A stretch of 64,000 nucleotides of DNA. Source: Kudoa neothunni. Taxonomy: Eukaryota; Animalia; Cnidaria. The translations under genes and the position numbers were made by a program. The stretch is taken from assembly GCA_964304625.1 (NCBI GenBank), contig OZ199839.1, positions 2,420,093-2,484,092 of the forward strand. Direction: 5' to 3'. Below are positions 1 to 58,767 of this stretch, piece by piece. The notes under the pieces were generated by a model, which had not been told where the DNA came from, searched no databases, and was given only the letters and a program-made list of their open reading frames with translations. The first letter of the stretch is position 1. Each line of letters opens with the position of its first letter.

Positions 1-1037
1 ACACAGACTTCTTGCATGTGTAGCATGAAACTCTGGACTTCCTGTCAATATTCCTAGAACAAAGTGTACATCTTGACTGTACTGGGATTAAAGTTTCTTC
101 ATTAGAAATAGATGTTTGCCCGTCCTTGATGTGTTTGTTAAATATGTTGAATCCAAATTTAATGATAGTGATAAGTGTTGTGTTTTGCGCAAGGAAGGAA
201 ATCAGTAATAAGTAATTCCGAAATAGATAGTTGGATAGGTAGTGGTGATCGTAATGTGTTGTCACCAGCGTGGCTCCCCCGCCTACCGACGATTTCCCCT
301 TCTATTATTAGGAGGAACCAATTCCGGATTATGACAATAAGATGTCCTAAACTTTGACGACTCAAAACATTTAGTTTGATTAATTTAGTTACCAGCTCCC
401 GAAGAGATATATTGATTTCCTCGAAAATCTCACGGATAGGTTCTAATTTGTCATGAGGGTGAATCGGCCCATCGATATTGCAGCTGAAAAAAGACTGCTT
501 AAATAGGGGGTGAGTTTCCCAGAGGAGTTTGAAGGATATTCTAGACCCATTACAACGATCAGATGCAATCATAGTACCAAGAAAGGCCATTAATTCTTTC
601 ATCGTTATTGCATTTTTATGTTTATACTGAGTACTTGATTGCCTGTACTTATTAGTGTAGAATAAAATTTTTTCTAACATAGAATCAGAAAAAACCAAAT
701 GGAACGAAGATATAATTGACGAAATATTTCCTGAATTTCCTATGGGACCAGGCTTATCGATAACATGATTGTGGCAACTCATTCGTTTTCTTGATTTGCG
801 GCAATATTTGATCACCGTCGACTTCTAAGTCATCAGAACTATTTTCTGATACCATAACTTTATCGAAAAATTAAATATTAACAAATTTTCATACAAACGT
901 AAATGCACCTGCAGAACCCAAATGACAACGTTACCACTCGTGCGTTTTTGAAAATAATCCCCAAATAATCCTATGGTCCATAGGGCTCGGTCGGTAAAGT
1001 TATAAATATGATTTTTTAGGTTTTTAACGTATTTCAT
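1..1037 (-). mobile_element. Degenerate, internally deleted piggyBac transposase remnant
   Basis: ORF 159-815 has PGBD-type segments (DSMLEKILFYTNKY, ITMKELMAFLG, DKLEPIREIFE). Bases 1-80 on the minus strand read SRCTLCSRNIDRKSRVSCYTCKKSV, a piggyBac C-terminal Cys-rich domain. The catalytic core is missing. Confidence 0.8.
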
Positions 1038-2614
1038 TTTAATTTAACTAGTGCTTTATATGTAAAAATAAATTTTATACTATGTAGTAACCATTACTTA
1101 TCATCATATATAATTTTTGAAGGTAAAGGATAACCTGCGTCATTTTAACAAGTAATATTAAACCAATTTCTTTCAAATTATCTATTTTAAATTTATAAGA
1201 TAAAAATATTAATAAAATTGCGAGATTTGATAAAATATGAATTAGATTCTTAACGTTTAAAAGATGAAATGTTTGATAATAAAAAAATTATCGTCGTCTC
1301 TTATGTTTACAAAATCCATTATTTCAAAAACAGCACAACCGTATAACTTTTTTCTTTGTTTCAGCAAAAATATCCGACAGTCAGTGTGATTTCTATGATT
1401 TTAAAAAGGAAAATAATTATACCACGACATAAACCAACAATTAATTTAAACGATTAGAAAATTTGTTATATCTTAGATTTTATTAGAAATGAACAAATAT
1501 TTAAATCATAAAGAGGTACGGTGATAAAATTATGTAGAATGTATGCTCTCGCAATGATTAATACAAATAATTTTGAAAAACAAATGAAGTACCGCTATAC
1601 AGAAATTAGAGGAATGAAAAAATTCTCGTTTAACGTGAAATTAAAAAATGTTAATTAGCCAAAGATAAGTTTCGAAGATACTAATATAACAAAATACGAG
1701 ACTAGAAAATGCAATTATGAAATAAATAAAACTGAATTCTACAGTTTATCGTAATTAATAGAATGAGTATTACATAAGTCTGACTGAGAATGTAGACAGG
1801 TGTATTTATGGATCATTTGTGGATTGTTGAGGATAATATTAATTGTAAAATTATTATTAGTCCATTTCTAGACGCAACACATAAGAAATCATGTGGGTCC
1901 ATAGTGAAATGAATATACGTATGTTGGTAACCAAGATTAAAAATTCGACGAAAACAACCGAGACCTGATTAACCACAAAAATTGTTAATAAATTTATGGC
2001 ACTATAAGCATATCACTCCATATTCTTTGTGTGAGAAATAGTTTTTGGTGTGGTTGCCGGAGAAAAAACACGCGCAATAAGGCAATTTTGGGGAGTGCCA
2101 CGGGGTATAAAATTACACAATAGCTGATTTAACAATAAATAATCGCGAAGGGCTAGGAGTTCTCAGCATTAATAGATCACGGCAAATGCTATTATGATGA
2201 CAAATAGCGGTTGCTGGAAGTATCCCACTGATGGTGCTACAATGATCAATACTCATTATTAAAGTATTGAACGGGTTAGTTTTTGTACGTTATCGCTGAT
2301 TTGGATATCTATTAATTTGGATTGTGCCAACAGCTTCACAAAAGATTAATGAAGATTATATACAACTAGAATTCGCGATGGTTCGTAATGCGTGCGACTT
2401 CGCTTTAAGGAAGGCTAGGTACGATTTTAAACTTAAATTAATGCTCAAATATCTTAAACCAGTAAAATTTCAACATAATAATATCGCCATCTATACACAT
2501 AATGATTCAATTGATATATGAGGCGGTTGAATGATTCGAGCGATTAAAATTTATCACCTAAACATTTTATTGAGGTGGCAAAGGTGTCTTACATTTTGTG
2601 TGTGTGTAGATTAG

Positions 2615-3374
2615 ATGCAACAGGATACCAAATACAACTACACCAATATCAAAGATAATATAATGCACAGTGGTAACAATATCAATAAACCACCAACAGT
2701 TCACGCGCTACCACCAAGTAAGTTGATGTCATCATTACCCATGTCTCATATGAGAACTCGTGTAGTGCAACAATTTGCTCCGTATGGTCAAGGTGATTGA
2801 AATTTAATTTGTTGTTAAATGTGATGAGTAGTCAGTCAGTTTGTTGATTTTGTTGTGGTTTATGCTCGATTTTAATCAAGTGGATAAATGAGGGACTTTT
2901 TATTGTTGTCAAAGCGAAACCGATATTATTAATCATCTCTTAAACTACTTATTGTAATAGTTGGTGTTTTAAAGGTAATATGGCGCCGCCCTCTTCGGCA
3001 AACACCAAATCAATGGTCAACGATAGAAACGAATTGTTCCAACTCGCAATGGAAGGCTCGGCTGATAATCCCAACTCCTATTTCAATCCCATACAACTGT
3101 ATCCGTGTGGAGTTTGCGACAAGCCTGTGATGGATGATCAGGAAGGCATATTGTGTGAGGTTTCGTGCAATCGCTGGTTTCATCGTCAATGCACCGGTCT
3201 CACCCCAATGGTATGAGATTGTGTTGGGTTATTATTGAAAGTGGTTTCCTTTCCACCGATATATAGAGTTATGAAATGCTGACCAAAGAGGAAAATGCCG
3301 CTTGGGCATGCGACAATTGCATTCGCTATTCTCAAATCCAAGCTAGGTTTCCACGTACATCAACCAACCATTAA
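2615..3374 (+). CDS. pygo: Pygopus PHD-finger protein; 3 coding exons (2615-2792, 2975-3210, 3267-3374), about 173 aa
   Basis: Spliced C-terminus LYPCGVCDKPVMDDQEGILCEVSCNRWFHRQCTGLTPMSYEMLTKEENAAWACDNC matches the Pygopus PHD finger. GT-AG introns keep the frame. An additional upstream exon cannot be excluded. Confidence 0.9.
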
Positions 3375-3649: not shown

Positions 3650-3705
3650 TTACCGATGACGTCATTATTATTCTTAGCAAAACGTTCCTTCTTACCGGTA
3701 TATAA
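3650..3705 (+). promoter_or_regulatory. Putative external (type 3) Pol III promoter of the RNase MRP RNA gene
   Basis: TATATAA at 3699-3705 lies about 29 nt before the P1 5' strand. TTACCGATGACGTCA at 3650-3664 is near the expected PSE position. Confidence 0.5.
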
Positions 3706-3727: not shown

Positions 3728-4270
3728 AAGTCGATTGGCGGCGTCAGAGGCTAATGCCACTCCGGTTGTTCCACGTTGGCAATCGGATATTGCATTGCGC
3801 GTCGTTTGCTGGCTATGAGAGAGTCACTCAACCATTGACTCGGTTTTCTCCTTTCTGTCTCCGGGTGTGTTGGATTGGGTGAGGTGACCCTCGCTCGCTC
3901 CCCTCCCCCGCCCGGTTGCAAAATCGGTTGTTATATCTTGTCGATGGCTCGGTTTCTCCCTTTCCTCTGAGGAAAGTCCCCGTGCTCGACGCGACTCATG
4001 TTGACCTGACTCGTTGCTCCTTGGCGCAAAGTGTGTCGAGTGTGTTGCGTCTGTCTGTCGTCTACACTGCAAGGTGAGACCCTAAAAAGGTAGTGTTCCT
4101 GGTGGGTGCGAGCTCTCTCAATGATCACTGGCAATCAATCTGCCATGTAGATTGTCGCACTAGCCGGGAATATTAAGCGTGGAATCATCGAGTCTTGCCG
4201 CAAAGGATTGATCGGGGTCGTTTTAGAAGGGCCTCTACCGTCCTTACAGAGTGGGGATTATAATCGACTT
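3728..4270 (+). ncRNA. RMRP: RNase MRP RNA (RNase P/MRP family), expanded to about 540 nt
   Basis: P1 AAGTCGATT(3728-3736)/AATCGACTT(4262-4270). P2 GCGGCG(3738-3743)/TGCCGC(4196-4201). P3a TCAGAGG(3744-3750)/CCTCTGA(3964-3970). CR-I GAAAGTCCCC(3972-3981) pairs with CR-V ACAGAGTGGGGATTA(4246-4260) to form P4. P19 AAGGA...TCCTT. Upstream TATA box, terminal TTTT, and GC-rich in an AT-rich background. Confidence 0.88.
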
Positions 4271-4499
4271 TTACTATAGATGATCGATGATCCATTAAGT
4301 AAGATTGTGTAACATTGAAATTTAAAAAATGTGTTTAGTATTTTTCGAAAATGTCTCTATATAAGCTTAAATTTTTAAAATTATGACAAAGTTGAGAAAA
4401 ATACAATAATTTTTGAGAAACGCCATAAGCAACCCAATAAACTCCCGAGTAAGTGCATGCGTAAAATAAAACACAAATATATAATTTATTAATCAACTT

Positions 4500-6173
4500 T
4501 TTTTAAATATATTTATCCGAATGAAAAGTATTTGAATATTTAAGATGAAGTCTCGACGAATACCCCTCACAATAGAGGTACGTTTTGTTGGCAGCACTCA
4601 CAAGTACGACTCCAGAATACATATTCATTGAAATATTCAGCGGTGATCGAGACCTTTTCCTCATAATCTAATCCCTTTATGGAGTTATTAGACCGGCAGC
4701 AATTTCGCGTGTATGTTGAATTAATGTTATTGTAGAGTCATTAAAGTAGCGTATTATTTTCTATGAATTGGTGACACACATGGAAATAAGATTAGTGAAT
4801 AATGGCCAGTATCATTTTTCACCCTTTTATTTTGATTCTGTAGTTTGCAATCGCGTTATCAGCTACATCGACACCTCCCATATTCGCATTGTAATCACCA
4901 ACAATCTTTGGCTGTGTTATGTTAATGTACATTTTTTTCTTTTTTTGGGAATCTTTTAGCTGATCCAATGGGGAAACACGACATAAAATTACTCATCAGT
5001 ATCACTGGTTTTGTATTGTTCCATTGAACACTAAAAATACCTTGTTTATTACTATAAACATCAAAAACGCCCCTTAGCAATTTGGAAAATTCTTTTGGTA
5101 GCTGAAATGGATATCGATTTGTCCATACAATCATTATTGTTGAAATGGATGTATCTTTTTATTTCTTTAAATTTTTTGTCAGTTTTTTTACAATTGTAAC
5201 TCTGGAATCTTCATTCGTCCCAATACATTTTTTAGCTTGGTAGAATATGATAACCTGAGAGAATTAAAATCCCAGTGAAGGTTTTCAATTCGGACAAAGT
5301 TAGGTTGAAAGAACCGTTATTCTTCTATCGAGCATATAAATTCCACTGTTTTACAATATGCAATAGAACACTGTCATCCAAAAATTTTTTGAACGTTTCA
5401 AATGAACCTAAATATCATCAAAATTAATTTTGAAAGATATCTACCTTTATATGCACCGTCTACCTACCGAGGGTTTCGAGATAGGTTTATTAACTGTTTC
5501 GGAGGTAGTGGTTGGTAAAACCTTTTCCCATTTAACATTGCTGTATTTAACAGCACTTTTGACCTCATGCTTTTGTATTTTAAACAATTGGGCACGCCCA
5601 GAAACATCGGGGATGTCATTATTTTCGAATATATTATCCTGTATGGCAGATAAGTTATCTTACAAATCAGTAAAGGCGTCAACATTATCGGGAGGAAGTG
5701 CTACTATATCTGGAACTTTTTCGAAAGTATCTTCGCTAAGTTCACAGATTGCTTCACTTAGTTTAATGTACTCAGTAACGTCAGACGTGTTAATCCTACC
5801 TAGCATCTGCATGTCTCGAGGGTTTATCGTTTCCATTTCGGCTCACTACTGTAACGTGAATATTAACTGATATTTATGTATTATTTTCTATTACAGGCAT
5901 TTGGACGGTTAAATGACAATATGTTTTAAGAGAACAAACAAAAATAAAAAAATTTCCCCGATGTATAACCTATTTTATGGTTCTATTATACGCAAATGTA
6001 CTGGCCAATAAGAAGAGATGTATATTAAAATGTTTAGAATTCATAAATAAAATACAAATAATATTTAAATAATAGGACCACGTATATTTTTATATGGAAA
6101 TTAACTAGTTAATAGTCGCAATATTAAACCCTATAGACGGCACCTAAACAGGGACCCAACAAACATTAATGGG
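4500..6173 (-). mobile_element. Decayed piggyBac element
   Basis: ORF 4922-5134 (GVFDVY...QWNNTKPVILMSNF) is piggyBac core. A Cys-rich remnant lies near 4570-4610. One end reads ATTAATGGG-TTAA at 6165-6177. The other end is unclear. Confidence 0.7.
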
Positions 6174-15476: not shown

Positions 15477-16166
15477 ATGGATGACGAACAGTTGAAACGA
15501 TTAAACCAACAAGCCAATACATGTATATTGGCGTTTTTTGAACGAAGAAAAAACAACCCAACTATAGTGGTTCCTCCTTCTATGCTACCAGTGTCTCCAC
15601 CTGTACGTGAAAACCAATTCAGATATAAAATGGACAACAGCTGTCTAGTTAAATCAACCACATCGGGTGTTATTGGTTATGCAATGGGTGGATTGTTCGG
15701 TGTGTTTATGTCGAGTATGAGGGCGGATTCATCTATGCATGTGTCCGCCGACTCTTCGCCATATTCCCTAAAGGCCATGTACAAAGAATTTAAAATGAAT
15801 GCTAAAAGCACCGCCAAAAATTTTGGGCAATTTAGTTTTGTGTTGGTTGGTACTGAATGTATGATTGAGAAGGTGATTAGAGGGATGGTGGGTGTGTTTG
15901 TGTTTTTATTGGTTTTTTAAGTATCGCGGAAAACATGACATCACCAACGAGATATTGGCTGGTATATTGGTTGGTGCAGTGGGTGGATTACGTGGTATAT
16001 TAATCTGGATTTTTTGGGTGGTCGACAGTTGAGTGTTGACCCCATGTGTGATTCATTGATCAAGTCTTGATTGTTATTTTTAGCAAGTCCGAAGTTGGCT
16101 ATGTTTGGCGGTTTGTCATTGGGTCTGTTTACCGGAGTTATTGGCATGTTTTTGGCCGGACATTAA
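15477..16166 (+). CDS. TIMM22: Mitochondrial inner-membrane translocase Tim22; exons 15477-15872, 15922-15994, 16084-16166
   Basis: DNSCLVKS..GYAMGGLFGVF...AKNFGQ...GTECMIEK|YRGKHDITN..AG...GGLR|ASPKLAMFGG. Both conserved Cys are present, with canonical introns. Confidence 0.95.
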
Positions 16167-26318: not shown

Positions 26319-28310
26319 TTAATCAAAGAGTTGATTAATGATTTCTTTGTTGCATTTGATTTGGTTGTCAACGGTTTTGTAAGCTTTTAGAAATGTGTTT
26401 TCAACCAAGTTTCCATCTCTAAGGTTGCCTACCAACTCATGGTACTCGTGGATCAGTTGGAGGTCCTCTTTGAGAATGGAAATTTTTTTCTCATGCTAAA
26501 TAACTTTAGAGAAATATTTCAAGCTTAAGTTGGTTACATCTGGTTTACAATCTGGGAATATATCACATAAACGAGAGTGCATATCGTCGAGTCGTTTCAT
26601 GTGAGTACTTACCATGGTGTTTAACGATGCGAATTTATCATCAAAACTGTTTCTTTTGATAGATTTCAACCGGTAAGAATCCACAATTGAAACCATCTCT
26701 CTTAACAATTCAAGTTGGATTGAGCATAAATCATCAAATTCCTGAAGATATTCAAGCAGATCATCGACTTTTCCTTTGTGGTTGTTATCCTTAAATAAAA
26801 TAATTAAATTAAGATAGTAATATTTAATAATTACATGTGAGCTTAGAGCTTTGGTTCGTGAGACAATCGAAACGCTGAATAGCACAACAAAAAATATGAA
26901 CGAAGCATAATATGGTTTGAATAGAAGAAACAATGAGTTGTAAGAGTACACGATTTGTATTTTTGTCTCTTGTGCAGGTATCAAATTACGAGCTTCAATT
27001 CTAAGAGTGATTCTCCCTCGCATATCCATATAATAGTAGGTGTTGTATTTGGTGACGTTGAAATCGATAGTTCGAGGAATATCAAAACTAACCACTTGAG
27101 CACCTTCTGGTAAAATAATTTCCAAAATAAAATTGTCAATCGATACAATATCTTGACACGCCCCCAACAAATTTATATTCAACTGACGTAGAGAATCAAT
27201 TTGATTGGATTGTTTTTTGATGACTTTGGTTGCAGGTCGTTTATATTTGATGGTGAATTCGGTGTTCCAACCGCCCATCAATGGAAAACGTGGTGTAACA
27301 TCCATTTGTAGAAAATTTCGCGTAGCAGACAGTGTACTTGTGGATATATTGCCAACCATATCACGGTAGTAATAATTGTAAGAGTCTTTCGGTAATCGAA
27401 AGAGGACACTGTTGATTATGTGAGAAGTTTTCGATAGGCTCGAGTCGGCAATTCTATCGCGAGAAAATTCTCCAACCAATTTGTTCGCTTGATTGTGAAT
27501 AATGTGCGATTCCACAAACTCCACATCGGCATACTCGGACACATAAACCTTCCTATGTAACAGCGAGGTGGATGTGTAACGAACAGACGTTGAAAGATGG
27601 ATCCAAAATGGAATGTTGCTGAAGGGAACTTGCTCGTTGTTGATAGAATATTTCAACTCGTTTCTATTAACAACTTCTGCGCTTTTCTGCGGGGTGTAAG
27701 AAATCAATTTGCCATCTTTCAATTTGTATGTTGTTGTTTGAACCTTCACTGGGTATATCGATAACACATTGACTGAATCTTCAAATACATACATCGGCAT
27801 CACTGTGAGTTCAAGTTCTAATGGATGTGTAATCAGTCGGTTGGTACATATCACTGTGTACACAACAGCAACACTCTCTCCACTTCTCAATGGATTCAAC
27901 AGTGAAACCTCATACACTTGATAGGAGTTGATGTCTTTGGTGTCTAGATTTTGGTTGGAGAGTTGTTGAAATTGAGATTTTTTTATAGTTTCTTTTGGTG
28001 CAACACCTTCTTTGTATGAAAAAACAGCTAGATGTTTGTAGTCGGTTTGATTCAACATAAAATACACGTTTGTCTGTGTTTTTGCACCTGTGTTGCTATA
28101 GGTTATGCGAAATGTTGAAGTTACAAGGCTGTTTTCAAATAAAACCTCTTTCTCTGCCCCTATAATTTCTACTCCTTCGAGTACTGGAGCAATCTCTTTC
28201 ATACTAATAGTGTGATCTGCTCCAGGAATAGCAGTGTAATTGAGGGCACAAAACACATAAAACATGCCAATAAAATCATGGAACGACTAGAATTTTCGTG
28301 TAGAAGCCAT
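26319..28310 (-). CDS. RPN1: Ribophorin I (OST subunit 1); introns 26790-26834 and 26496-26537
   Basis: YYYRDMVGNISTS, TPRFPLMGGWNTEF, IILPEGA, YYYMDMRGR and a TM helix. The last exon is HEKKISILKED...QLFD*. The start and signal peptide region (28265-28310) appears frameshifted. Confidence 0.95.
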
Positions 28311-33721: not shown

Positions 33722-36025
33722 ATGCTTGCACGTATGTTGAATAGTAGAAATAGAGAAGATACTATATCACCGCTTGTCGACTCGTCGACAACCACCAACA
33801 ATCTCTGTTTACCAACCACTGCTACAACTTCCACTAGCAGTAACCCAACCACCAACAGTCTTATTCATCATTCATCAAATGATAATACCACAACCGATCA
33901 GGATCAGGATCAAGACCAGGAACAGGATCAGGACCAAGATCAGCTAGATGATGAGGAAGATGGGGCGGATAACTTCTCACCGCCATCAAATCCAACATAC
34001 AAAATTGAATCCAACCCAATTTCGTCGTTTTCTCTATCCACTTGTGATATTGCCAGCTTTGGTAGTGATTTTTTGAGTGGTGGACAATTCTCCAACCTCT
34101 ATCAATCCAACCAGTCCACAGATAAATCCGATCTAACATTGATGGATTCATCTGTCAAAATGGCAGCTTTGAAATTGAAACACCTGGAAGAATTGTTAAT
34201 GAATCTCACCAACTCCCAAATCAACCATCTTGAAGTCAATATCAATAACACTAATAATATTGGCGATGAAACTCAATTGGATTTGTTTCATCTCACAAAA
34301 TCTATAGTTCAGAAAATGAACTCCGACTCACCCCATCTCACCAATCATGCTCTTTTCAATGTCGATAATGGTCATTCGTTTTTGGATCGTGATAATTCTA
34401 TCAATCCACTCCAAAATTACATTCCAAATAAGGCTGTCGAGAATTGTATGCAATCCCGAAATGTGGCACCGATTTTATGTGAATACGTTGCCGCAAAAAG
34501 TCTCTTGTCGAAAAAGTTGAAATCATCCCTGGCCAATGTAAACGCTCTCAGAAATGTCCTGTTGAAATTGGACTCTCCCAAAAATTGTATATCCATTCCT
34601 ACCAATCAAAAAATGTTGTTTGGAAACAACTATTCTCGCTTGAAGAATTCTCCTCCTGTGAATGGTTCACCCCGCCAAACTCACCACCAACGGTTGTAGT
34701 GGTTCGTCGACTGTGAGCTCCAACTCCAACTTATCAAATGAACCGACAGAATCTGTCACAAATTTTCCAAATCGTTTAAGAATGTTTGATTGCAACAGAA
34801 AACATATTATTATGACATCACTCCCTCACCAGTGTATCAGAATGTTTAACAAACAAGCACATGTCAACTCTAGAAAAGCAGCATTCCAAAAAAGGACTCA
34901 TATTAACGATATTCACATCTACAAATTGTTTGATCGAATCATTGAGGATGTGCCGAATGGTGTACCGTTCAAACCGATGCATCGTGCTCGAAAACGACGC
35001 TCATTTTCCCAACTTATTTGGATGGCTGATTTTAACGACTCCACTGTAAATAACACCAACACACAGCTTTCCAATCATAACAATTCCACAAATGGCGTTA
35101 TTGGAATTGAATCGTCGTACAAAACCGAAGGCGCCACCCTTAGAGCCAGATCTTGTCGTCGTGACTACAGCTCACTTTTCGATTTGAGCTCCAATGATGA
35201 TGATTATGTGGGTCGTGATGATCAACATATATTGGATGACTTCGATTCTGATTCTATATCTACTGCTAATGATGGTCGTCGTCTTTCTATGTCCAACTCT
35301 CATATCAGGCGTCTACATCATTCTTCCGCCGTCACACATGGTCCTCGCAAAAGCTATCTCTCCAGATTGGATAGCTCCCTCAATTTGAACCACCACAAAT
35401 CTAATATTTCCTCCCATCTGCTGGATAACAACTCCAAAAATGGATCACTAAACAAACAACCCCAACCCAAAAGTGTCTATGATTATGTGATCCTTCCCGC
35501 CGAACTCATGCCTGTTGTGCACATTGAACCAATTGTATATAAAGAGGTTGTCACTCCGATGTGGTACACGGTTGATGATAGTCGAATGGATTGGCTGAAA
35601 AATTGTCTCAAAAATAAACCAACTCAACCTACCACCACAAATCCATCCACCCCTACTACCAATACCAACAAAATCGATTCAGATACACTCACCGATGATG
35701 AACACTTCAATCAAATGCACATCCAGTATGAGAACGCTGAAAAAGAAAGACTCCTCGAGAAAGCTCGTCAAGAGAGTAACTCTTCCGACCCCAGTGTGAC
35801 CGCTGTTGAGACGTCTGTACCAGCTTCAATAACAACCACCCCTACCGATATTGTTTCGTGTAACCTTTCGAAAAAAGTTGTAAGGTCTAGTAATGGCCGT
35901 TTTACCAAACTGTCCACTGGAGAAAATTAATCCACCCCACTTTGTGTAAATTTGAAAACACTGATGATCTCCTGGCAATCAGTGATAGTCTATCTATGGA
36001 CTATTTTCTCGCTCACCATAGATGA
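33722..36025 (+). CDS. KANSL1: KAT8 regulatory NSL complex subunit 1-like (PEHE domain); one long exon split by an apparent +1 indel at about 34670
   Basis: YDYVILP...HIEPIVYKEVVTPMW...LTDDEHFNQMHIQYENAEKER is a PEHE domain, and LRARSC resembles the ARTRP/WIN motif. The stop is at 35930 as assembled, or 36025 if one A is missing. Confidence 0.82.
33896..33943 (+). repeat. Coding hexamer repeat (GAYCAR)n encoding DQDQDQ
   Basis: Seen directly in the sequence. Confidence 0.85.
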
Positions 36026-43517: not shown

Positions 43518-44755
43518 ATGACTGAAAGTTTTATATTCGATATTTGTCACTTATTTGACCTCACATTAATTAGGTAAGGATACAATATTAGAATTGATGA
43601 AATCCACAAGTGGAGTTAGCGGTGGATTCCGGGAGGTAATCGACCTTCTGGAAAAGAATCACATAGATGAAAATGGGACACCTAAGTCTATTTCCGACAA
43701 ACTATCAGATGTACTAATGTTGCATAAATTTATATACGTAGGATTTAGAATATTTCAATGCTGTCGGAAAGCAAGACCGAATATCAATGCAGTTTGACGT
43801 TGGTTCAACTAATTCAACAAATCAATCTCCTTTTTTTATCCAATTCAAACATTAACACCACGCACAATAACAAATATCAAAAGTAATACAACACGAAGGT
43901 GTGACATTAAATGTGTGTAGTTTTTGGATTATCTAAATCAACAAATTCGAAGGCATGATTCGGACATCCAAAATCCAATCGAATTGTCAAGCTCCGAGCA
44001 TGAGGTGATTAGGTTTTAGGTTGAAATAGTAGCCACTAGTATTTAGGAATTTGAAGAATGGATAACAACACTTGTGGCTGCTAACATCGAGACAATTTTA
44101 AAGAACCTTTGTGATATCAATGGAATTAAAAATTCTCTCCGTGACAACAAGACCGAAGGTGCTTTCTCAGATTATATACTCTATGTAAACTATTATAGAT
44201 GATAGTAAGAATCATCGCGAATTTGCCCCACCATTGAGTGATCAAAAAAGACTTAATTTGGAAAAAATTGCAGATACACTTTGGACACATGTCAATTCCA
44301 CCAATAATCAAATTTGTGAGAATAAATCCAAACTTGACGAACTTCAAGAGTCCAATTATTCAATTAGAACTCGTTTGAAAAACTCATTGTCTCATGTGGT
44401 AACACAGACCACACCCATTCTTGACGCCTTGTCAAAAAGTGATTCCTTCTATAAAAATATTCATCTGCACATTGAACACATGGAGACAAAAGTTGAGTAT
44501 CTACAACTTAAAATGGAGCTCACCAAACAAGAACTCTACAACAACACCTACGATGAAGAGAACCTAAAAGCGCTTAACAATGTCAAAAGTCAACTGGAAA
44601 GAAAATTGTATGTGGCAAAAAATAAACTAGCTCATTACAAACGCTCGTTAGACACATACAACAACCTTGGAGCCGATTTCAAAACTATATGTGACAAATA
44701 TACCGCTCTACAGAAACAATATGACAACAAAAAATGGGCTCTTGATTCGTTATAA
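43518..44755 (+). CDS. HAUS4: HAUS augmin-like complex subunit 4 (multi-exon)
   Basis: C-terminus TYDEENLKAL...LDTYNNLGADFKTICDKYTALQKQYDNKKWAL matches HAUS4 (SYEVLGEEFDRLVKEY...ENKRWAL). The 5' exon structure is approximate. Confidence 0.85.
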
Positions 44756-56390: not shown

Positions 56391-58767
56391 CCCATTCCGG
56401 GTCCAATATTTAAATTTCCTTAAAATTCAAAATATATGTTTACATAAATCTTTTAATAGCGAAATTAAATTATTATTAATTAAAAATTAAATTTTAATAG
56501 GAAAATAACAAAATTACCTAAGGGCCGGAAAAGAAAACAAAACCCACCAACGTGATCTTCTAATTGAACGTTTTGTTGCAGAATGCGCGAAAAATTAACT
56601 ATTTTATATCGAGAACAGAGTAAACTACTACGGATTATGAAATCTATCGGGTCCTTAACGAATATAATTTTGACAATTTTGACAAAAGTAGATAGTCTTC
56701 TTTGTATACACAACACATTCTTCGTCTCTTTTTCTCAGCATTAGTACTCTTCATAGGCCGGCTACACAAAGACGTAGCACGAATATTTTCGATGGATTGT
56801 TGACGGGTTTGTTTTTTCAGAATTATTTATACTTGCCAAATTGGCTACGATATATCTAATGTGATTTAATATTTAAAAAAGCTGATTTTTTGTTTGCTTC
56901 TGTAATTAAATATTCTCCATGAATTAACTGCTGCGAGCGAGATCATGTTAGTAAAAAAGAGACCAATAACATTTTTTTCGAGCGAATTCTTGTTCTGTAG
57001 CAAGATACACAATTGTCTACGGTATCAACACCACCCGTATAGTTGTTGTACATATGACAAATTTGAGGCTGTTCGATCGATACATAGCGCTTTTTGGTTC
57101 TGCAGTAACGTTTCACATGTTGAATTGGTTCAACAATAAGCAAATTACTAACAAAAGTAACAGGGTTCGTATCATTCCGTTGAATACAGTTGATTTCAGT
57201 TATAGAATCTTTGAAATATTCATGGTAGCCTTGGTGGTTTTTATTCATTAATTTCGGAGTCGTCAAGGGACAGTTCGACGTTCGGTTCATCCTCACTGTT
57301 CCAGTAGCAATAACACCCCTTCTTTTCAATTCAACCAATAATTTGTAAGAGGTGGAGAAATTATCGAAATACACATGGAGCATACTTCTATCCTTTTGCT
57401 CGTCGACAAAATTTAACACGATGCTTCCACCTAGGCCAAAATTCTTGTTGTAGATTTTTGTCTTACTTGTATATACACTAAAACTGTACACATATCCTTC
57501 AGAAGACTCCAAAACCCACTGCTTGAAACCGAAACGGACGGGGTTACCTTTCATATACATTTTGCGGGAGTGGTGGTCCGTATATGGAACCATCTGTTCA
57601 TCAGCAGACAAGTTGTCGTGGAAATATCCAAATTTGTTGAAATTTTATAAAATTTCTGATTTATTGGACTTTTCTTGAAAAATTTATCGTCTTTATCGAG
57701 TCTTGAATTATTATTGAAGTGGAGGTGTCGTTTTATCAACTTGAATCTTTGATAGATCATAGACTTTTTACAATTTCAACCCCAGAATCCATTGTAGTTT
57801 CCCAATACGTATGTTTCTGAGATAATCGATTGTAACCGATAATAATAAAATACCAATAAAAGATTAAGTTCTTTTACAGTTAAATGAAACGTGTGATCAT
57901 TCTTTTGTCGTGCATAAATATTTTATTTCTTTAACAATATGTAAGAGCAAATTTTCATCCAAAAATTATAGGAATGTTTCGTAGGATTCACATCTAGTGG
58001 CTGAATCATCGCGTATAATAATAATATATTTATTTTGAGAAACTGTTTGGCATTCAGTGGCAATTTCAGATGAATCATTAGATTGAGATATTTCACACCA
58101 TGTAGCACAAACATTATCATTAAATGATTAATTTTCAACATATGAGAAAGTTTCTATTATACCTCATATTTCTGGGACGGTTCAAATGCCAGTGTCGTCA
58201 CAATCTCTTGAAACGAAGGGACCTTCTTCATCAATCAATACATCAAAATTATCTGGAGGTAACGTCACAAAATCAATTGGGTTCAGAATATCATCGTCAT
58301 TTTCATTATCATAGACGGTATCAATTAAATTTTTGTACCTTATTATAACGTTGTAAGCACAAGGTCAAGTAAGAGATTAATTGGAATTTAGCACGTCAAT
58401 GGGTTTTCGTTCTCTTTTAGGCACCGCGCTGTATTTTTTATATTTGTTACCCGCAATGACGATTCGATCTAATTTAAAATTATATCATTTATCTAATCTT
58501 TCGGAATTATAACTTAGCTTAGAAACTCTAAATTAGCCATTTTTACGAAGTTACTGTCCTATTTTCTACCCCAGGTATACCATAATTACTATATAATACG
58601 TAATCTCAAAAGATATAAATTCATCATTAGATTTTAATCTTTAATTACATTCCTAATGGATAAATACGTGATATATATTTTGAAATAATATTCATCGACG
58701 AATTATTACAATTTCTTAGAGAGGCAACAATGAGGAGCCGAAAAGGGGAACGAAATCCCGGAATGGG
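56391..58767 (-). mobile_element. Full-length piggyBac element (2377 bp) with inactivated transposase
   Basis: TTAA|CCCATTCCGGG ... CCCGGAATGGG|TTAA. SADEQMVPY, YFDNFSTS and YNNYTGGVDTVD give the D-D-D triad, and a Cys-rich C-terminus (KTIYFCQNC) is present. The ORF is frameshifted. Confidence 0.95.

Follow-up and report, generated by a model that had tools for sequence, protein, structure and literature searches.

The window, by which we mean the whole stretch of 64,000 nucleotides of Kudoa neothunni DNA that was analyzed, contains at positions 3728-4270 (+) a locus that very probably encodes an RNase MRP RNA. With 543 nt this RNA is about twice as long as the human one of 265 nt (PMC3001073), in agreement with an earlier note on the same DNA, which had estimated about 540 nt and twice the human length. 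We are confident, if short of certain, of the complete explanation given here, according to which the locus holds this myxozoan's only gene for RNase MRP RNA and the P3 domain of the RNA is a tolerated peripheral expansion.

The helices P1, P2, P3a, P4 and P19 all close in MRP order, and coordinates and pairings re-derived from the sequence (Table 1) reproduced the topology proposed in the earlier note. For P4, the seven base pairs were confirmed, but the first two letters of the 5' strand that had been claimed are unpaired. The MRP RNA has a minimum free energy of -204 kcal/mol (z -4.22), and none of 100 shuffled sequences was as stable. Its GC content is 52.7%, compared to at most 44.8% in the other 543-nt stretches of the window that were scanned. 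Genome-wide searches covered 40.26 Mb, i.e., contigs of 17.15, 12.04, and 11.05 Mb plus about 18 kb; the K. neothunni assembly has been described as comprising 40.2 Mb, with the mitochondrial genome, which is circular, in addition to three chromosomes (PMC12239612). In this genome the MRP locus is single-copy. The CR-I decamer occurs 19 times, which is about the frequency of its control, and among these copies only the one in the window is GC-rich and combined with an upstream promoter element and a full downstream CR-V. Therefore, the genome lacks a further MRP gene of ordinary size that carries this CR-I.

Table 1. Features of the RNase MRP RNA locus and its upstream region (positions within the window)
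Feature	Position	Strand	Remarks
Pygopus-like PHD gene	2615-3374	+	three exons; upstream synteny marker, outside the RNA; PF27108 PHD_Pygo in relatives of its middle exon
Upstream promoter element (PSE position, CRE-like core)	3656-3668	+	42 nt before TATA; core and spacing as in U6 and RNase P
TATA box, type-3 RNA polymerase III promoter	3698-3705	+	+1 lies 30 nt on (31 in U6, 31 in RNase P)
RNase MRP RNA, predicted transcript	3728-4270	+	543 nt, U tail to 4272; fold, GC content, orthologue on contig L027
P1	3728-3736/4262-4270	+	nine Watson-Crick pairs and a G-U pair
P2	3738-3743/4196-4201	+	
Expanded P3 domain	3744-3970	+	227 nt; besides P3a, a side hairpin at 3752-3797 and an irregular long arm at 3817-3962
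P3a	3744-3750/3964-3970	+	7 of 7 pairs, here and in the orthologue
CR-I and P4 5' strand, MRP type	3971-3981	+	motif, fold, identity in the orthologue
P4 pseudoknot	3975-3981/4253-4259	+	7 pairs, CR-I with CR-V
P5 to P10 region	3982-4190	+	209 nt: short P5, long P8-slot hairpin, hairpins, P10/P12 stem
GCAA-capped hairpin	4060-4080	+	
Small hairpin	4081-4090	+	
Long P10/P12 stem	4091-4175	+	
CR-IV and P2 3' strand	4191-4201	+	CR-IV of six nt, AGUCUU
P19	4203-4245	+	fold with constrained core: pairing probabilities of 0.94 and 0.99 for its two helices
CR-V	4246-4272	+	stretch holding CR-V, the 3' strands of P4 (4253-4259) and P1 (4262-4270), and a Pol III terminator of four T (4269-4272)

The Rfam model of RNase MRP RNA (RF00030) matched neither the locus, nor its 3' part, nor any other site in the genome, and Rfam scans of the locus, its 3' part, and the orthologue described below returned chance matches only. 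The earlier note had expected a covariance search to match in pieces, and Rfam gives no match whatsoever. The Rfam test likewise failed on the accepted MRP RNA of Trichoplax (PMC2655684). No match was obtained in a metagenome scan for close relatives. As the core architecture is common to both ribozymes, it would also fit a second RNase P RNA. We nevertheless assign the locus to MRP, as the earlier note had done, because P4 is of the CCCC/GGGG form, a separate RNase P RNA gene is present, and there is no other MRP candidate. In addition, P5 would adjoin CR-I in either of its predicted registers, CR-IV has six rather than eight nucleotides, and no P-type CR-I/P4 was found at the locus. A better fit to RNase P had been named as a refuter of the MRP assignment; the nuclear RNase P model RF00009 has no match here, compared to 28.9 bits at the true gene. 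A second RNase P RNA at this position is thus hardly credible.

The TATA box that had been placed at about -29 is present (Table 1), with its letters TATA beginning at 3699 (-29), and a nine-letter upstream element is located exactly 42 nt before it, as is also the case in the U6 and RNase P genes of the same genome. Going by base composition, a genome of this kind should contain 0.04 chance occurrences of the element combined with a TATA box at fixed spacing; the combination was found before U6, RNase P, and MRP. A stricter pattern of element and TATA box matched only U6 and the MRP locus in a genome search. This pattern had been built from U6 and MRP, and independent support therefore comes from the RNase P gene and from the orthologue, in which 12 of 13 positions of the promoter element are identical and a TATA box is present. 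With its upstream element, TATA box, and T-run, the MRP locus has the appearance of a stand-alone Pol III gene. A palindromic CRE-like element 42-43 nt before the TATA box characterizes the promoter sites in the window (3656-3705), in locus L006 (U6), in locus L001 (2095-2046, RNase P), and in contig L027 (964-1014). This myxozoan type-3 promoter might be used to locate other Pol III RNAs, namely 7SK, vault, Y, and telomerase RNA.

Relatives of the Pygopus-like gene upstream of the promoter were sought in public read assemblies with its middle exon alone. Contig L027 (run SRR31175926), which comes from a distant relative, carries an MRP RNA gene behind Pygopus and is syntenic with the window in this respect. 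The ribophorin of the same run is 41% identical to that of Kudoa and is its nearest relative in the databases. The comparison of the two RNAs was based on anchor blocks, a global MAFFT alignment being unusable in the middle. At the 5' end 19 of 24 positions are identical, and in the block from P3a to CR-I (3961-3983) 20 of 23, a score that none of 1000 shuffles reached. All seven P3a pairs are formed in the orthologue, with one compensatory change from G-C to A-U and one one-sided change from A-U to G-U; covariation was assessed on P3a only, L027 being a single orthologue that ends before CR-IV. The contig covers the first 262 nt of the RNA and stops where the P10 stem closes; together with the following 95 nt of the window this gives about 357 nt. 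The P3 of the orthologue has 74 nt, in which a second arm already accompanies a side hairpin; long stems are found in its P5-P10 region as well, where GARAR is absent. A promoter in common with U6 and RNase P and a syntenic orthologue with the core and a compensatory pair indirectly support the earlier claim that the RNA is functional. The echo of human RMRP that had been noticed in the octamer CCCUUUCC (3958-3965) is weak evidence because the octamer overlaps P3a and is lost in the orthologue, which keeps only its pyrimidine-rich character. Of the remaining contigs with Pygopus, L028 stops some 330 nt past the gene and shows neither a promoter element nor visible synteny with MRP, L038 stops at the Pygopus gene, and L029-L032 have a different gene downstream of it.

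The separate gene for the nuclear RNase P RNA, which the earlier note had presupposed, is located on another chromosome (G000:C1:3428794-3429324 (-), corresponding to locus L001 1492-2022 (-)). It has the P-type CR-I/P4 and a CR-IV of eight nt. The RNA comprises about 531 nt, as the promoter sets its start about 220 nt upstream of the part aligned by Rfam. Since Rfam covers just the last 304 nt, annotation would truncate this RNA. At its ends, a P1 of 5 + 6 pairs closes with the 3' end, followed by a P2 of 10 pairs and a P3a of 7 pairs. Its P3 measures 213 nt and is predicted to fold into a side hairpin and a long branched arm. This layout is similar to that of the MRP P3, without detectable sequence similarity between the two (467 of 1000 shuffles were as good). 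A common origin of the insertions in the two RNAs was rejected on this basis. The U6 RNA of the same genome has normal length.

In human MRP RNA, P3 has about 55 nt. The description of the Kudoa RNA as greatly expanded holds: 543 nt with a P3 of 227 nt contrast with a P3 of 74 nt in the orthologue. In total, about 185 nt are extra in the Kudoa MRP RNA compared to the orthologue, 153 of them in P3, and as far as the two sequences tell, the expansion is mostly one of P3 and lineage-specific. These 185 nt were either gained in Kudoa or lost in the relative; from a comparison of two sequences we infer a gain, because P3 is short in other animals. The fold of P3 has a z of -2.4 against mononucleotide shuffles, and its inner structure is an energy prediction. 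The MRP P3 contains two copies, 80% alike, of a pyrimidine-rich stretch of 20 nt; this repeat is marginal (99 of 2000 shuffles were as good). Growth of P3 by duplication of the P3 end together with CR-I was rejected, 220 and 627 of 2000 shuffles being as good.

The k-mer coverage of the K. neothunni assembly is near seven (PMC12239612), which would be compatible with an insertion that is absent from the working RNA, either as an assembly error or by removal after transcription. However, the inserted sequence is unique, GC-rich, and structured and lies neatly within P3a, an equally placed insertion is present in the RNase P RNA on another chromosome, and the assembly was made from long accurate reads. 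We regard such an artifact or processing event as very improbable.

We propose that RNA polymerase III, as suggested by the RNA family and the promoter, synthesizes the 543-nt RNA, which would fold into the catalytic pseudoknot of P1-P4 and P19-P2-P3. By analogy to the family, it would bind POP1, an RPP20-RPP25 pair on P3, and the remaining proteins common to RNase P and MRP (PMC8509007, PMC6049500), and the particle, like its counterparts elsewhere in eukaryotes, would cleave single-stranded pre-rRNA within ITS1. Insertions might have grown the side hairpin and the long arm, both outside the anchoring P3a and pointing away from the active site. The growth of P3 is then most likely to be read as a tolerated peripheral expansion segment. 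Since the proteins that bind P3 are the same for both RNAs, this arm would have had the same freedom of growth in RNase P. In yeast, an altered P3 end causes no noticeable defect (PMC8509007). With respect to rRNA, the sole 18S match in the Kudoa genome (L004, G000:C2:5424779-5428248) consists of a 3' fragment of myxozoan appearance followed by ITS1 and 5.8S and borders on unrelated, AT-rich DNA; a strict search of the genome did not reveal a full rDNA unit.

The near-equal sizes of the two P3 domains (227 and 213 nt) and their similar layout on different chromosomes, in a genome with a U6 of normal length, might alternatively point to an adaptation common to RNase P and MRP, i.e., to a large P3 selected as a protein-binding or scaffolding platform that offers extra RPP20-RPP25 sites or RNA in place of lost subunits. 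The 20-nt repeat in the MRP P3 would fit such a platform, but it is marginal, and the two P3 domains lack sequence similarity. Moreover, the relative gets by with an MRP P3 of 74 nt, and the growth of the two domains may or may not have coincided, as the size of the RNase P P3 is known from the Kudoa genome alone. This reading, which differs from tolerated expansion solely in why P3 grew, is possible, though we consider it doubtful. A bolder version is unlikely: that under common selection the Kudoa lineage grew matching P3 domains of 210-230 nt in RNase P and MRP as a new RNA platform and, in addition, rewired the periphery of the MRP active site without GARAR and possibly without RMP64/RMP24.

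A short P5 beside CR-I, a P8 with a GARAR pentaloop, and a CR-IV of six nt have been named as the three signatures of MRP RNAs, and the pentaloop and A7 of CR-IV have been termed highly conserved (PMC13184271). In the Kudoa RNA, P5 can form in two registers, 3982-3984/4186-4188 (-77.4 kcal/mol) or 3982-3986/4176-4180 (-72.6 kcal/mol), which are within 5 kcal/mol of each other and both adjoin CR-I. No GARAR was found between CR-I and CR-IV; the P8 slot is occupied by a long hairpin, close to the tip of which the variant CAAAG is located (4027-4031). CAAAG is a listed variant (Tetraodon), and GARAR is nearly universal rather than strict because it is missing from several accepted MRP RNAs (PMC1796607). 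CR-IV (4191-4196) is placed directly before P2 and begins with A-G-U, and its last U may pair in P2. At its position 7, U (4195) replaces the A conserved in the published comparisons (PMC13184271, PMC1796607).

Of the protein partners, POP1 is encoded in the genome with a match over the Pfam cut-off. Its N-terminal exon (L037 1498-1614; G000:C1 near 3683484) appears in a provisional alignment to have Tyr at the presumed substrate-anchoring position, where human and yeast POP1 presumably carry the anchoring His. A Tyr is an allowed residue at this position (PMC13184271). Two weak Alba-family matches were below the Pfam cut-off (L034 1639-1806 (-) and L035 1408-1677 (-)); judged by eye, these exons could be RPP20 and RPP25. 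The Rpp20 model had no match in the genome, and searches of the PDB yielded no confirmation of the Alba matches or the first POP1 exon. RMP64/NEPRO and RMP24 were not found with the NEPRO and C18orf21 models in searches without positive control. Missed subunits are to be expected because myxozoan proteins are very divergent; the Kudoa ribophorin is 27-30% identical to those of non-relatives.

With two of the three MRP-specific RNA signatures altered, GARAR absent from the orthologue too, and RMP64 and RMP24 not found in these uncontrolled searches, the locus might encode an MRP-derived ribozyme with a changed substrate that no longer cuts ITS1. Against this, accepted MRP RNAs vary in GARAR and the listed variant CAAAG is present (PMC1796607), CR-IV retains the MRP length of six nucleotides, and there is no alternative MRP RNA for the task. 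We consider a changed substrate improbable. The missing features would weaken a description of the RNA as a textbook member of its family, not that of an orthologue working like MRP. The Kudoa RNA also offers a natural test of the claim that MRP catalysis requires the GARAR loop and the adenine of CR-IV.

Broken remnants of piggyBac-type transposases are located in the window at 159-815 (-), 4819-5134 (-), and 56943-57611 (-), with PF13843 matches, and in L033 at 1157-3028 (-). Such remnants are found just downstream of the MRP gene and, by eye, of the RNase P gene. A GC-richer stretch of the window has two overlapping long ORFs of 325 and 422 aa (33722-34699 and 34662-35930 (+)) without Pfam match at an E value of 0.1. 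Ordinary genes of the window include those for a Tim17 family protein (15477-15920), ribophorin I in a single ORF (26496-28265), and HAUS4 (44234-44755).

In the literature searched, we found neither a P3 of 200 nt nor an animal in which both RNAs have grown in this way; key surveys were outside the scope of this search, which may therefore have overlooked a long P3 already in print. Nor was a description of a myxozoan MRP RNA, full myxozoan RNase P RNA, or myxozoan type-3 Pol III promoter found there, and the K. neothunni genome paper does not mention RNase P and MRP (PMC12239612). The Kudoa RNAs would indicate that in an animal the P3 protein-docking arm can become three to four times as large, and this in both sister ribozymes, within the tiny genome of a fish parasite known for gene loss.

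Compared to the RNase MRP RNAs known from human (RMRP) and yeast (NME1), the Kudoa RNA is alike in P1, P2, P3a, the MRP-type P4, a predicted P5 beside CR-I, the long P10 stem, P19, CR-V, and a six-nt CR-IV, and also in being encoded by a single-copy gene with upstream element, TATA box, and T-run. It differs from them in its length of 543 nt, the branched P3 of 227 nt, the lack of GARAR on a short P8, the change of A7 to U in CR-IV, and the lack of a match to RF00030. With the nuclear RNase P RNA (RF00009) it has the catalytic core and the P3 docking arm in common, whereas the P4 sequence and the length of CR-IV differ. Long P and MRP RNAs and extra P3 helices are already known from fungi and protists, and the RNase P RNA of Candida glabrata, with 1149 nt, is a precedent for very large insertions (PMC3001073). 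Among MRP RNAs that are long or bear a P3c, those of Pezizomycotina, Cryptosporidium, Dictyostelium, Anopheles, and Brugia resemble the Kudoa RNA in peripheral growth, an extra P3 helix, and, in some lineages, loss of GARAR (PMC1796607). These long MRP RNAs, however, have grown in P10 (> 200 nt; PMC1796607), whereas the Kudoa RNA, which comes from an animal, has grown in P3 and is matched in this by the RNase P RNA of the same genome.
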